Sequence record: PP712906.1
Reading direction: 5' to 3' (one strand)
DNA length: 64,000 bases
Shown here: piece by piece, positions 16,542 to 62,899 of the stretch
Layout of the letters: the number at the start of each line of letters is the position of its first letter
How positions within the stretch are numbered: position 1 is the stretch's first letter
Position numbers and translations under genes: made by a program
The notes under the pieces: generated by a model
The model's input: the letters and a program-made list of their open reading frames with translations, nothing else
Databases searched by the model: none
Told to the model about the DNA's origin: nothing

Positions 16542-16652
16542 TGTGAAATAAATCACGAAAAAGTAGTTTTCGGGTATTGACAATAACACATCAATACCCG
16601 ATAATAAACACATCAAGACGAGATACGAACTACTTAAAGAGAGAACATTATG
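16542..16652 (+). promoter_or_regulatory. early promoter with an upstream CRP-like site
   Basis: TGTGA-N6-TCACG 16542-16557; TTGACA 16577-16582; GATAAT 16600-16605; CATCAAGACGA 16611-16621. Confidence 0.7.
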
Positions 16653-17474
16653 ACAATCACTAAAGCAGAAATGAAAGCAATCGCACTTGATCTAATGAGC
16701 GGTAACAATCTAATGCAACGCGATTTGATTGCTGAAGGTTGGTCTTTCGAATTCTCAACTCGCAAAGCTGCACTTGGTGACTGTAACTACCGTACTAAAG
16801 TACTACGTCTTTCTGAAGTGTACTTGAATGCTCGTACTAAAGAAGAGCAAATCAACACAATCACTCACGAAATGGCTCACGCAATCGCGTACACTGATTT
16901 CAACGAACGTGGTCATGGTGCTATCTGGAAGCGTGTGCATCGTCAACTAGGCGGTACTGCTGAACGTTGTTCAACTGTTTCAAACCCTGAAGCCGTAGAC
17001 AGCAAGTACGTTGTTTTCTTCGAAAACGCTCAGGGTGAACTAGAAGTAGTTCAAAAAATGGATCGCATGACTAAGCGTTTTCAACCAGTACACATCAAGT
17101 CTCTATACTTGAAAGGTCGCAAAGCTGAAACTGAAGGTCAACTTCGTTGTGTTTCTTCAGCGACGTTCAAAGCTATCAAAGCTGATTTAGAAGCTAAAAA
17201 AGCTGATAACGCTGAAGCAGCAAAACCAGTTGAACCAGTTGCACCTAAAGCTAAGAAAACTGAAACACCTAAGCCTGCTAAGAAAGTTTCAGCACGCGGT
17301 CAAGCTGCTCGTGACGCAATCGCAGAAATCGTGATGACTACTACTCACAAAGGTTGCAAGTCAGTGTCTTTCGAACAGCGTGGTAAATACAAAGACTGGT
17401 ACATCATGATTGAACTAGAAGCTCACACAATCGAACAGCGTCTAGATACTTTCAAAAAGAAACACAGTTTGTAA
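16650..17474 (+). CDS. SprT-like zinc metalloprotease
   Basis: LGDCNY..LRLS..TITHEMAHA..GHGAIWK; Pro/Lys-rich linker and a small C-terminal domain. Confidence 0.88.
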   Translation: MTITKAEMKAIALDLMSGNNLMQRDLIAEGWSFEFSTRKAALGDCNYRTKVLRLSEVYLNARTKEEQINTITHEMAHAIAYTDFNERGHGAIWKRVHRQLGGTAERCSTVSNPEAVDSKYVVFFENAQGELEVVQKMDRMTKRFQPVHIKSLYLKGRKAETEGQLRCVSSATFKAIKADLEAKKADNAEAAKPVEPVAPKAKKTETPKPAKKVSARGQAARDAIAEIVMTTTHKGCKSVSFEQRGKYKDWYIMIELEAHTIEQRLDTFKKKHSL

Positions 17475-17484
17475 TCTCTCAATT

Positions 17485-17505
17485 AGCCCCGAAAGGGGCT
17501 TTTTT
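17485..17505 (+). terminator. rho-independent terminator
   Basis: AGCCCC-GAAA-GGGGCT TTTTT. Confidence 0.88.
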
Positions 17506-17510
17506 AGGTT

Positions 17511-17580
17511 TGAGGCGGAAAAATTCCGTCTCATCTTAGTAGAATTAGTGCTTTTAGTGATATTAGAAGTATTAGTAAGA
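17511..17580. repeat. hairpin plus 9-bp-period TTAG array (copy 1)
   Basis: TTAG at 17536, 17545, 17554, 17563, 17572 after TGAGGCGGAAAAATTCCGTCTCA. Confidence 0.85.
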
Positions 17581-17631
17581 TTTGTTTAACAAACACCTTG
17601 ACAGCCGTATAATACACGTCGAGGTGATGAA

Positions 17632-17871
17632 ATGATAACGATATACACAATTCCTAACTGTGACGGTTGTCGTCACGCTATCGCCCTCTGTAAGTTCAAA
17701 CACGTTCCGTATACTGTAATCGAGTTACAGTCGCAGACTGACATCGACCAATTACATCAAAAGCTTGGTGATAATCGCAACATTCGCGTTCCTCTTGCTA
17801 TGCATGGTGACACATACATCGGTCACCTGCCTGAATTGAAGAAATGGGTTGATGAACAGACGTATAAATAA
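17632..17871 (+). CDS. glutaredoxin-like protein
   Basis: ITIYTIPNCDGC CxxC motif, VP motif, YIG. Confidence 0.9.
   Translation: MITIYTIPNCDGCRHAIALCKFKHVPYTVIELQSQTDIDQLHQKLGDNRNIRVPLAMHGDTYIGHLPELKKWVDEQTYK
17863..17870 (+). promoter_or_regulatory. T4-type late promoter
   Basis: Exact TATAAATA upstream of the capsid-like gene. Confidence 0.85.
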
Positions 17872-61661: not shown

Positions 61662-62210
61662 ATGGCATTTATGAAAAAAGAGAAAGACGCAAAAGACATT
61701 ACCGAAGCAGATATGCAGTACGCAATTGCAGTACAAAGCGTATGGATTCACAAACGCTACACAGCGATTATTCCAAACTGTTACACCAAATGGGATAATG
61801 AAGCTGATCTGTTTGCTATTCGTCCAAGTGGTCTTTGTGATGAGATTGAAATCAAAGTATCCAAAGCTGATTTTCGAATTGATGAACAAAAATCCGTTAA
61901 GGTCATCGACGAAAGTACGCCAAATTTACGTTGGCATCGTTATGAAGACGTTCCAAAACGCACAGCATTGCAAGATGGTAAAATGTCGAACTACTTCTGG
62001 TATGCATTCCCTAAAGGGCTTGTAGACCACTCTGAAGTCCCAGAATGGGCTGGTATAATCGAAGTGGATGGATTTCTGAACGCCAGAGAAGTAAGAATGC
62101 CTAAACGTCTGCATGGCGGTAAGATGACAATCGAAGAACAGCTAAAGCAAATCAAGAAACTTGGATATCGCTTCTGGAATCTGGTTAAAAAGAACAAAAA
62201 GGAACAGTGA
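61662..62210 (+). CDS. MmcB-like PD-(D/E)xK nuclease-fold protein
   Basis: EADLFAI..DEIEIKVSKADFRID; NYFWYAFP; AGII. Confidence 0.8.
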   Translation: MAFMKKEKDAKDITEADMQYAIAVQSVWIHKRYTAIIPNCYTKWDNEADLFAIRPSGLCDEIEIKVSKADFRIDEQKSVKVIDESTPNLRWHRYEDVPKRTALQDGKMSNYFWYAFPKGLVDHSEVPEWAGIIEVDGFLNAREVRMPKRLHGGKMTIEEQLKQIKKLGYRFWNLVKKNKKEQ

Positions 62211-62283
62211 GGCGGAAAAATTCCGCATCATCTTAGTAGAATTAGTAGTTTTAGTGAAGTTAGAGATATTAGTAGTATTAGGA
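62208..62283. repeat. hairpin plus 9-bp-period TTAG array (copy 2)
   Basis: TTAG at 62233, 62242, 62251, 62260, 62269, 62278 after TGAGGCGGAAAAATTCCGCATCA. Confidence 0.85.
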
Positions 62284-62321
62284 GATTGAAAATGACTTGA
62301 AAAAGTTGTTGACAGTCTCCT

Positions 62322-62350
62322 TTTTTGATCGTACTATACAGTCCTTGAAA
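62322..62350 (+). promoter_or_regulatory. sigma70-type early promoter
   Basis: TTGACA-N17-TACTAT upstream of the ArdA-like gene. Confidence 0.75.
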
Positions 62351-62371
62351 CAAATTATGTGAGTGAAGACT

Positions 62372-62899
62372 ATGAGCTTGAGTGAACGTGAAGAAGAGCT
62401 AAAAGCATTAGCTATCGACCATGTGTGTGACGATGAAGTTGCTGTCACCGTTTCATGCGCTGGTATGAGTAATTACTACACTGTTTGCCCGTCAGAGTTC
62501 AAAGACTTTTTGGACAACCATGAGGGAACATCTTATGTAGCATTTGAATGGCACAACATCCCAGACGATTTACAAGATGAAGAACTAGACTTCGATGGTC
62601 TACTTGCTTGGTTCAATCTAGATGAACATGAGCGTGAAATCTGCGAAGCATTGTATGATAATAACGTTTGTATGTCATACGAAGATGCAGCCGAGAAAGT
62701 CAGTGACTGTTGGGTTTTTGAAGGCACGAGCGAAGACTATGCAAGACATGTAACGTCTGAATTAATGGGCATTCGCTTAGAAGATATGCCTGTCATTGTA
62801 AGCAGCAACATCAACTGGGGTGATGTATTCATCGACCTTGACGCAGAAGGTAGTATCTACGAAATTGGTCGCGACAAATACTTAACAGTACACGGTTAA
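62372..62899 (+). CDS. ArdA-like antirestriction (DNA-mimic) protein
   Basis: Strongly acidic; FEWHNIP, EDYARHV, DMP..VSSNINWGDVFIDL resemble ArdA motifs. Confidence 0.62.
   Translation: MSLSEREEELKALAIDHVCDDEVAVTVSCAGMSNYYTVCPSEFKDFLDNHEGTSYVAFEWHNIPDDLQDEELDFDGLLAWFNLDEHEREICEALYDNNVCMSYEDAAEKVSDCWVFEGTSEDYARHVTSELMGIRLEDMPVIVSSNINWGDVFIDLDAEGSIYEIGRDKYLTVHG

Follow-up and report, generated by a model that had tools for sequence, protein, structure and literature searches.

Two copies of a hairpin and phased TTAG array

The window analysed here, a stretch of 64,000 nucleotides from record PP712906.1, derives from the genome of Vibrio phage TCU-VP03-AIR1, a T4-like phage of the KVP40 type. 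It holds two copies of a non-coding module of about 100 bases, composed of hairpins and six TTAG motifs at an exact spacing of 9 bases. The features around copy 1 and copy 2 are as follows.

16650..17474, plus strand: gene upstream of copy 1, SprT-like, 274 aa (Pfam SprT-like, E = 3e-19)
17485..17510, plus strand: canonical intrinsic terminator directly before copy 1, GC stem and T run
17512..17532, plus strand: main hairpin of copy 1, 'TC' variant, one G-T wobble
17533..17589, plus strand: ATC linker and array of copy 1, five exact TTAG units (17536-17580) and a degenerate sixth
17586..17613, plus strand: sigma70-like promoter 3' of copy 1, TTAACA, 16 nt, TATAAT
17632..17871, plus strand: gene downstream of copy 1, glutaredoxin-like, 79 aa (Pfam Glutaredoxin, below the curated cut-off)
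61662..62210, plus strand: gene upstream of copy 2, 182 aa (open reading frame list)
62209..62229, plus strand: main hairpin of copy 2, imperfect stem of 9 pairs with one G-A mismatch, 3-nt A loop, 'CA' variant
62230-62232, plus strand: invariant ATC linker of copy 2, read from the sequence
62233-62286, plus strand: array of copy 2, six 9-bp units, each opening with TTAG
62309..62337, plus strand: sigma70-like promoter 3' of copy 2, TTGACA, 17 nt, TACTAT (promoter scan)
62363..62899, plus strand: gene downstream of copy 2, 178 aa, PHROG 15771, the 'ArdA-like' gene of the sequence-only reading

The sequence-only reading had reported that copy 2 (62208-62246) matches copy 1 (17511-17549) at 37 of 39 positions. 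Our comparison gives the same count, and the two differences fall at the stem positions it had named, one turning a G-T pair into G-C and the other a G-C pair into a G-A mismatch. The six TTAG motifs of copy 2 start at 62233, 62242, 62251, 62260, 62269 and 62278, in the exact 9-bp phase that had been described, while in copy 1 the array opens at 17536 with five exact units, followed by a degenerate sixth that merges into the first hexamer of the downstream promoter. The sigma70-like promoter after copy 2 was likewise recovered, and the genes around the two copies are indeed not the same. The label 'ArdA-like' could not be upheld, since the product of the gene downstream of copy 2 has no Pfam match and belongs to a PHROG of unknown function; this protein is highly acidic (42 D+E versus 10 K+R).

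A search for phased TTAG (at least three motifs) matched the window 7 times, counting overlaps, versus 0 in 100 shuffles, and the 17-nt hairpin core occurs in it exactly twice. As DNA, the main hairpin of copy 2 is predicted to fold at -8.5 kcal/mol (z = -5.1). Its linker and array (62230..62286) have no C on the top strand, and among all 54-bp windows of the genome the array duplex ranks within the least stable 0.1%. The stop codon of the upstream gene, whose product has only a weak, sub-threshold MmcB-like Pfam match, overlaps the first bases of the element. No terminator-like site was found in 61900-62500, neither between this gene and the element nor at the element hairpin itself, which lacks a T run and was rejected as an intrinsic terminator. 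At copy 1, the glutaredoxin-like gene is followed by the capsid vertex gene (record annotation).

Six syntenic copies in KVP40-type phages

We compared five phage genomes from three lineages (TCU, KVP40, VH7D, nt-1 and D480), which together contain 30 copies. Each genome has six hairpin-plus-array copies, not two, and degenerate extras are absent. The six loci are syntenic and form an identical set in all five genomes. Because this synteny extends over three lineages, a recent neutral duplication is ruled out. All six copies are co-oriented with local transcription, four on the plus and two on the minus strand of the genome. Core genes (gene 1, wac, uvsY and gp24) adjoin four of the six, and the genes downstream of the copies include uvsY, gene 1 and the glutaredoxin-like gene. 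The earlier reading had proposed a genome-wide map of the copies as a check for regular spacing; on this map the spacing is more regular than chance (P = 0.006 for the minimum gap, P = 0.003 for the CV), which counts as one observation because the loci are syntenic.

A scan of IMG/VR and the genome collection for the phased-TTAG pattern returned only unrelated repeats among the matches listed. An AT-rich viral contig (L132/L515) matched the model weakly, at 38.9 bits. In the papers examined, we found no printed occurrence of the element sequence.

Near-identical arrays in PLE-like islands

PLE-like islands on Vibrio and Photobacterium chromosomes contain near-identical arrays within their ORF-less region. 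Each island has one copy, always with six units; TTAG is intact in 36/36 units of the six distinct island copies, and every island array is within 0-2 of 45 nt of some phage copy. The island DNA otherwise bears no resemblance to phage. The islands, which lie next to an M32 peptidase gene, encode a large serine recombinase and homologues of a clamp or clamp loader, contain iterons and a region without ORFs, and fit the description of PLE-like phage satellites (PMC9410903). As in PLE, the large serine recombinase is at one end, the genes are almost all hypothetical, and iterons with a putative initiator lie beside a big ORF-less region between divergent operons; the islands measure about 14 kb versus about 17 kb for PLE and, unlike PLE, are located beside the M32 peptidase gene (PMC9410903).

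The island array sits among repeated promoter-like modules, and in some islands one of these lies just upstream of the element. The modules lack the invariant final T of the sigma70 -10 hexamer, and the repeated 36-nt promoter-like module was not found in the phage genomes. The promoter scan beside the array gave no match in five of seven island copies (L466, L475, L489, L521 and L523), and the sole match in the other two (L517 and L525) is weak (9/12) and lies 69 nt past unit 5.

Besides the element, the islands share with KVP40-type phages a gp45-type clamp domain, a clamp-loader homologue and a PHROG 15749 fragment. Together, these links point to KVP40-type phages as the putative helper of the islands; the PLE literature leaves the helper phage of non-cholera PLE-like satellites open (PMC9410903).

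Constraint on the repeat units

TTAG is intact in 150/150 units of the 30 phage copies, and none of the 20 TTAG columns varies, versus 19 of the 25 spacer columns (Fisher p = 7e-8). The sequence-only reading had taken conserved phase with free spacers to imply selection. Selection on phase and on TTAG is borne out, but 'free' overstates the latitude of the spacers: although 19/25 columns vary, the spacers contain 1% C, and unit position 6 is a purine without exception. Each unit also retains a preferred spacer of its own.

A small protein-coding gene across the array was rejected. TTAG spans a third-codon position in all frames, yet it is invariant in the 150 units, and the distance to possible start codons varies among orthologues, so the reading frame is not maintained. 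Short ORFs are annotated over the element in the D480, nt-1 and TCU records, and several of these genes are probably spurious.

Together, our results show that the module is a composite, strand-oriented, non-coding and cis-acting element, in which selection acts on the nucleic acid itself. The simplest reading of the phased motifs is that a putative protein reads them.

Hairpins and an oriented strand

From 5' to 3', the module usually begins with a terminator and usually a mini-hairpin motif, continues with the 9-pair hairpin, CATC and the array, and usually ends with a promoter. The CATC junction between hairpin and array is invariant, and in the array a strand free of C carries five to six units of 9 nt, with TTAG invariant throughout. 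Over the 30 phage copies, 88% of the cells of the main hairpin are paired, with compensatory changes at two pairs, including one double compensatory change. Wobble pairs in the hairpin are exclusively G-T on the top strand.

A GCGNAGC/GCGNNAGC mini-hairpin motif lies 40-46 nt 5' of the array in 21/30 phage copies and is missing at two of the six loci. The motif is defined by free loop letters, a fixed GC...GC frame and a G...A closure (PMC13037366), and all three variants upstream of the element obey this rule. In the element, the loops of this motif are GAA, GCA, GTTA and GTCA, with CC-GAA-GG in the islands, where the stems are changed by compensation (compare the motifs in PMC13037366). Genome-wide, GCGAAGC was found 56 times versus 17.7 expected, and nearly all other copies are within coding sequence. 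Mini-hairpins of this type resist nucleases, are much less stable as RNA, and are known from the primase-dependent origins of G4, St-1 and alpha3, from RSF1010 ssiA and from N4 early promoters (PMC13037366). The element shares with these systems the motif, its permitted variation, the confinement to one strand and an adjoining second hairpin; the known examples, however, function in single-stranded DNA of phages or plasmids, or in the extruded promoters of a virion RNA polymerase, whereas the genome carrying the element is a T4-type duplex.

The spacers with 1% C, the G-T-only wobbles, the double compensatory change and the mini-hairpin motif all argue for a single-stranded top strand. We consider it highly probable that a sequence-specific phage trans-acting factor reads the phased TTAG and that the top strand would matter in single-stranded form.

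The module might instead act at the RNA level, in read-through or polycistronic transcripts. Its hairpins would protect the upstream 3' end, and its unstructured A/U/G-rich repeats would offer phased sites to an endoribonuclease or a ring-shaped RNA-binding protein, insulating transcription units. The transcription orientation of all six copies, the tolerance of G-U-type pairs in the hairpin on the top strand only, the lack of a preceding terminator at copy 2 of the window and the promoter-like module just 5' of the element in some islands agree with such a role. At the ORF111 locus the array forms a 5' leader that holds the ribosome-binding site and runs directly into the start codon, which in nt-1 lies within unit 5, so the array is transcribed there. 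However, canonical intrinsic terminators, separate from the element hairpin, lie 10-45 nt upstream at four of the six loci. A known RNA family was rejected, with no Rfam 15 match at the gathering threshold in the whole window, as was the folding of the array into a specific RNA hairpin, since shuffling the order of the units gives the same energy (z = -0.37). The GTTA and GTCA tetraloops obey the rule for DNA mini-hairpins, which are much less stable as RNA, and presumably fall outside the GNRA rule for stable RNA tetraloops. An RNA-level role also fails to explain why island and phage arrays are nearly identical and why the copies are evenly spaced in the genome, and we regard it as improbable.

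Flanking promoters, terminators and duplex stability

A sigma70-like promoter lies 3' of the array at five of the six loci and in 23/30 copies, versus 8.4% of random windows, and its orientation always matches that of the element. The promoter downstream of copy 2 is retained at its locus in 5/5 genomes, as is an equivalent of the copy 1 terminator at its own. The promoters start 4-31 nt past unit 5 with no fixed helical phase, and one locus is entirely without a promoter. The GC content of the arrays is 22-28%; in duplex stability they rank among the lowest 0.1-0.7% of 54-bp windows genome-wide, five of the six in the lowest 0.1%. Such low duplex stability would likewise be compatible with a regulatory region.

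The arrays could be promoter-upstream platforms, where a phage DNA-binding protein would coat phased duplex sites and switch the downstream promoter on or off. Because the clade has AsiA and no MotA (KVP40 has AsiA and no recognisable MotA), a MotA-independent 'middle' mode is conceivable, and the islands could carry the platform to sense infection. We take the T4 counterparts of uvsY, gene 1 and the glutaredoxin-like gene, all downstream of copies, to be middle-mode genes, which would fit this mode, as would the position of the island array amid repeated promoter-like modules. Contiguous arrays of short repeats bound by small regulators are of a known kind. The closest parallel is Cox of helper phage P2 acting on satellite P4: about six 9-bp boxes on both P2 and P4 are read by this small helper protein near promoters, with a period of about one helical turn, compared with exactly 9 bp in the element.

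Several observations sit poorly with a platform. The promoter is wholly absent at one locus, and elsewhere its distance from the array varies without fixed helical phase. A C-free strand, G-T-only wobbles and a single-strand mini-hairpin are unexpected for a duplex-binding site, and the presence of only six sites per 245 kb, evenly spaced, is left unexplained. In the islands, the promoter-like modules lack the final T of the -10 hexamer, and a promoter adjacent to the array is missing in 5/7 copies. We consider a promoter platform possible but rather unlikely.

Recombination among copies

In the between-lineage comparison, the core of the element is more conserved than its flanks. At the uvsY copy, TCU and KVP40 differ at 8/69 core positions and at 0/144 flanking positions. 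Gene conversion between the copies, which homogenises them, is visible in this comparison. The homology between copies stops short of the promoter.

Gene conversion would be expected if the element were an ordinary sub-family of the PeSL-type (promoter-early stem-loop) cassettes of nt-1 and KVP40, kept alike by recombination, with no factor reading TTAG. Terminator-promoter cassettes with an AT-rich stretch 5' of the -35 have been reported for these two phages (PMC2839356, PMC4122927). PeSLs and the element alike are intergenic, repeated and transcription-oriented, comprise a stem-loop, then an AT-rich stretch, then a sigma70-like promoter, and exchange sequence among copies by recombination (PMC2839356, PMC4122927). 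However, the PeSL stem-loop, with the nt-1 consensus of A-run, G-run, loop, C-run and T-run (PMC2839356, PMC4122927), is the terminator itself, whereas the element hairpin is not a terminator. PeSLs are numerous and clustered in hyperplastic regions by indels, whereas the element occurs at just six syntenic places, most of them in core regions. Of the PeSL hallmarks the element has the promoter and lacks both the terminator stem-loop and the many copies in hyperplastic regions. What sets it apart from PeSL is a mini-hairpin motif, a separate hairpin that is no terminator, and the TTAG array with its strict phase; we found this array mentioned nowhere in the running text of the two papers (PMC2839356, PMC4122927). 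Homogenisation is unable to give 0/20 variable TTAG columns beside 19/25 variable spacer columns, and the host islands show the same constraints. An ordinary cassette is very improbable.

A packaging or recombination signal would also accommodate gene conversion. The small subunit of the terminase or the recombination machinery would then use the element as a landmark, for example a hotspot seeding recombination-dependent replication, and the satellites would share it as others share cos or pac. Sharing of a cis site between helper and satellite mostly concerns packaging. Mini-hairpins are nuclease-resistant (PMC13037366), and T4 origins coincide with recombination hotspots, according to the title of a cited paper. 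On the other hand, copies on both strands are ill-suited to unidirectional packaging, and the association with promoters is left unexplained. Packaging in T4-type phages is regarded as largely sequence-independent. Conversion alone is little informative, since any 70-100-bp repeat would recombine in a T4-type phage. We judge a signal of this type to be distinctly improbable.

Comparison with known origins

[quoted passage not shown] In the T4 record, oriF is annotated at the uvsY start (rep_origin, NC_000866.4). The element likewise occupies several dispersed sites, is joined to promoters, has an easily melted stretch and includes one copy directly 5' of the uvsY promoter, the position of oriF in T4; as in oriE, its short direct repeats stand at even intervals. 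It also has the phased direct repeats (five to six, exact 9 bp) and the easily unwound stretch of an iteron-type origin. It does not conform to the oriF/oriG type. The T4 unwinding element is downstream of a MotA-dependent promoter and transcribed, whereas at five loci the array precedes the promoter, and at four a terminator precedes the array itself, in a clade without MotA. The T4 origins lack a common motif, whereas the element consists of six near-identical modules.

The DnaA-trio system (PMC8287927) also uses a short, strictly phased motif on one strand, there in the unwound stretch; the published trio (5' to 3') is contained in TTAG, and the 9-nt unit equals three trio steps. In a bacterial basal unwinding system (BUS), three or more NAN triplets in a row lie no more than 16 bp from a DnaA box (PMC8287927). 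No DnaA box was found near the arrays, the best match mostly having 3 mismatches, which is the chance level, and within the unit the three triplets have a central A in 100%, 55% and 68% of cases. The host DnaA system was rejected on these grounds. The element is not a BUS member, and at most would work in a similar way via another oligomeric factor.

Discussion

The six conserved, evenly spread loci and the presence of the element in host islands suggest that phage machinery very probably reads the module as a signal, most likely at DNA-opening sites. Our tentative proposal, for which we claim less than an even chance, is that each copy is a putative origin-like site of DNA opening and loading, read by a phage factor. 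The array would melt with exceptional ease, much like an unwinding element, and its six phased contacts would place an oligomeric phage factor. The hairpins may fold on the displaced non-template strand and keep it open, and the neighbouring promoter, directed away from the array, would aid opening. The copies would then be the counterpart in this clade of the several origins of T4, and by carrying the site the satellite-like islands would couple themselves to the infecting phage.

The sequence-only reading had suggested multiple origins or a genome-organising element. The even spacing, low duplex stability, position at uvsY and single-strand hairpin motifs fit that suggestion, although none of them shows initiation. 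Against an origin-like site stand the arrangement in T4 oriF and oriG, where the unwinding element is transcribed 3' of the promoter while the array lies 5' of it, at four loci behind a terminator; the transcription of the array at one locus; and the degenerate main hairpin in about half of the island copies. About 0.5 kb from the array, the islands also possess iterons and a putative initiator of their own, so a second origin is perhaps unneeded.

A wider and more doubtful version of the origin-like site is a shared cis 'handshake' between T4-like vibriophages and PLE-like satellites, in which an oligomeric phage factor would open six origin-promoters. The factor would read the six TTAG contacts on the unwound C-free strand beside the single-strand hairpins, and the satellites would have copied the site and thereby tied their own programme to infection.

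T4-type phages are a classic model of replication and transcription, yet their origins have no shared motif, and KVP40-type phages lack the activator MotA. A sequence-defined, strand-oriented module in six copies at conserved boundaries offers a tangible entry point for studying how DNA-opening sites or regulated promoters are marked in this clade. Its presence in both phages and PLE-like islands of Vibrio and Photobacterium is an apparently unreported link. If the handshake holds true, KVP40-type phages would be the long-sought helpers of non-cholera PLE-like elements, and the module would represent the first sequence-defined, multi-copy origin signal for T4-type phages.

Copy number and conservation of the element

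The window corresponds to positions 181586-245585 of the genome of Vibrio phage TCU-VP03-AIR1 (TCU). Its final 4 kb match the end of TCU (PP712906.1) at 100% identity and KVP40, a T4-like Schizotequatrovirus, at 99%. The element consists of a hairpin, a CATC junction and an array of 9-bp units that each begin with TTAG. The two copies described by the sequence-only reading were recovered: copy 2 (62208 onward) and copy 1 (17511 onward) agree at 37 of 39 positions, both differences fall at the stem positions it named, and TTAG recurs at exact 9-bp steps, in a series of six starting at 62233 and one of five starting at 17536. Promoter-like sites lie 3′ of both copies, as it had also noted. Phased TTAG arrays are absent from shuffled window sequence. 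The label “ArdA-like” for the gene after copy 2 finds no support in Pfam or PHROGs. This gene (window 62363-62899) encodes a very acidic 178-aa product (42 acidic versus 10 basic residues) that is assigned to no family and could be a DNA mimic; nothing speaks in favor of ArdA membership.

A genome-wide count had been proposed as a check. Scanned piecewise, the whole TCU genome contains exactly six copies instead of the two first seen. The inter-copy distances of 26-55 kb are more even than chance (P = 0.003-0.006), which, given the synteny of the loci, counts as a single observation. A search with a covariance model trained on 30 copies (six loci in five genomes) recovers these six in TCU and the corresponding six in D480, a divergent phage, and no additional degenerate copy in either. 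By BLAST, the module is matched in 51 Vibrio phage records, at about six places per record. The six copies occupy the same loci in TCU, KVP40, VH7D, nt-1 and D480, and every copy is oriented in the transcription direction of its neighboring genes.

Loci of the element common to the five phage genomes
5′ of uvsY
5′ of gene 1 (dNMP kinase)
5′ of wac
5′ of the glutaredoxin-like gene preceding gp24
5′ of the acidic-protein gene
5′ of the lipoprotein-like gene

The six copies are old. Orthologous copies differ on average at 8.1 positions per 69 nt and paralogous copies at 10.7, and between lineages the core is generally more conserved than the flanks. Sequence comparison indicates that patches transfer between copies: between TCU and KVP40, the uvsY copy shows 8 differences in 69 core positions and none in 144 flanking positions, despite 99% identity of the two genomes overall.

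In two metagenomic relatives of the phage with 60-79% protein identity (L492:3768-3856 and L500:2480-2569), the wac and glutaredoxin-locus copies are retained. A few C occur in the spacers of these copies, which shows that the C-free spacer rule is strong but not absolute. An AT-rich viral contig (L515:3700-3780 and L132:12141-12204) has no main hairpin but does have GCGTAGC, the CATC junction and an array of five TTAG units whose phase slips once; with a model score of 38.9 bits, this could be either a distant relative or coincidence. At window 17251-17281 (minus strand, within the SprT-like CDS), four TTAG-like units occur in phase, with one mismatch; this run is probably a chance match, since it has no hairpin, no junction and no covariance-model match.

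Sequence constraint and anatomy

In units 1-5 of the 30 copies, 0 of 20 TTAG columns vary as against 19 of 25 spacer columns (p = 7e-8). The sequence-only reading was thus right about conserved TTAG, whereas its free spacers did not hold up: 1.07% of spacer letters are C, unit position 6 is a purine in all units, and each unit has its own preferred spacer. The hairpin-to-unit-1 junction is invariant. Coding constraint is ruled out as the cause of TTAG invariance because TTAG covers a third-codon position in every one of the three frames. Some records annotate short genes over the element, namely TCU ORF237 (L004:28425-28625, in a TCU genome piece), nt-1 ORF204 and D480 genes VPHD480_0031, 0096, 0302, 0404 and 0430. 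They keep no common frame, one is on the opposite strand, and they are probably artefacts of stop-free frames created by the repeat.

The main hairpin has 88% of cells paired across the 30 copies; two neighboring pairs change jointly from G-C to C-G, and all wobbles are G-T on the top strand. It is not terminator-like, which rules it out as an intrinsic terminator; a canonical one lies closely 5′ of the element at four of six loci. By analogy, the element can be likened to a hybrid of a PeSL cassette and an iteron-bearing origin, yet defining features of each are missing. In PeSLs (PMC2839356, PMC4122927) the stem-loop is a terminator and many copies occupy plastic regions, unlike here, and a plain PeSL-type repeat is very improbable, well behind regulation of the adjacent promoter. 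No DnaA boxes were found at the arrays and no Rfam family matches the element.

GCGAAGC or a variant is present in 21 of 30 copies, 40-46 nt 5′ of the array. All variants, which have GCA, GTTA or GTCA loops, conform to GCGNAGC/GCGNNAGC, an extraordinarily stable DNA mini-hairpin that is far less stable as RNA and is known from G4-type phage primase-dependent origins, RSF1010 ssiA and N4 promoters (PMC13037366). The whole TCU genome (pieces L002-L005 plus the window) has 56 GCGAAGC versus 17.7 expected. Four are in the element and nearly all others lie within genes, which points to codon usage as the source of the excess.

A sigma70-like promoter begins 4-31 nt past unit 5 at five of six loci (23 of 30 copies versus 8.4% of random windows). 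At the sixth, the array continues into a ribosome-binding site and start codon, the nt-1 start codon lying inside unit 5. At this locus, that of ORF111, the ribosome-binding site is part of the array (L334:9362-9370 in nt-1; L002:47375-47392 in TCU). As the start codon it also gives in nt-1 belongs to a different downstream gene, the array is a translation-start region for unrelated proteins.

Array GC is 22-28% versus 42.6% for the genome, and five of six arrays rank among the 0.1% least stable 54-bp duplex windows. Fold prediction leaves them unstructured as single-stranded DNA. As RNA they can fold via G-U pairs, but shuffled unit order folds equally well, ruling out a specific RNA fold; an RNA-level role is unlikely, less likely than a regulatory one at the promoter.

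The element in chromosomal islands

A metagenome scan with the invariant junction returned two further phage relatives and four other contigs. The four have no protein-level similarity to the phage; one encodes Thoeris, a restriction-modification pair and an M32 peptidase. Homologues of the gene adjoining the element occur only in Vibrio and Photobacterium chromosomes. An island family of ~14 kb lies beside the M32 peptidase gene in both genera (L517:3300-17300, Vibrio chromosome CP150876.1; also L489, L475 and L521-L526).

Features of the islands
Large serine recombinase: far end
HTH regulator and small resolvase
ORF-less region, 1.4 kb: between divergent operons
Iterons: 5′ of a putative initiator
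Variant gene: gp45-type clamp domain
Variant gene: AAA protein, 27.6% identity to phage clamp loader
Variant gene: VapE or ParA
Variant gene: conserved 77-aa protein, match to phage ORF158 family

The iterons change in sequence along with the N-terminal portion of the neighboring protein (330-380 aa), and the cargo is variable (Thoeris, restriction-modification pair, ParA, VapE, gp45-like clamp). Judged by sequence, the islands fit PLE-like satellites, which have been described in non-cholera vibrios with helper phages unknown (PMC9410903).

Six distinct island variants carry one element copy each and two carry none. Every array consists of six units, all with TTAG intact (36 of 36), has no C in its spacers, and lies 0-2 of 45 nt from the nearest phage copy. 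About half of the copies have a degenerate main hairpin; the upstream GAA-loop hairpins are retained, with compensating stem changes. Apart from the element, the ORF-less region has no resemblance to the phage. At L517:8960-9480 and L521:1700-2500 it contains a cluster of at least seven short hairpins whose loops are GAA or GNA, together with a 36-nt promoter-like module in two to four copies; the second hexamer of this module has A, not T, as its last base. The literature searched, which did not cover the original KVP40 paper, yielded no description of the TTAG array or its occurrence in host islands.

Proposed function

It seems safe to predict that a phage factor recognizes the phased units in a sequence-specific manner, because TTAG invariance and the near-identity of island and phage arrays would otherwise be unexplained, and that the top strand acts single-stranded at least in part. 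The main rival, a platform where a regulator would bind duplex DNA for the adjacent promoter, is attractive because the clade has AsiA and lacks MotA; we regard it as possible though doubtful. A packaging or recombination signal is less likely than this platform, and improbable.

We tentatively propose that the element is an origin-like site for DNA opening and loading. Against this proposal stand three points: the array lies 5′ of the promoter rather than 3′, unlike a T4-type origin, in which the unwinding element follows the promoter; no initiator was identified; and the islands possess their own iterons. The origin-like proposal draws on the melting-prone array, the priming-type hairpins, the outward promoter and the six even copies. 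The array would provide an extreme unwinding-prone stretch with phased contacts, beside single-strand hairpins of the type found at priming signals, and the promoter would direct transcription away from it. The six evenly distributed copies would then recall the several origins of T4, one of which is the uvsY promoter (PMC3016281).
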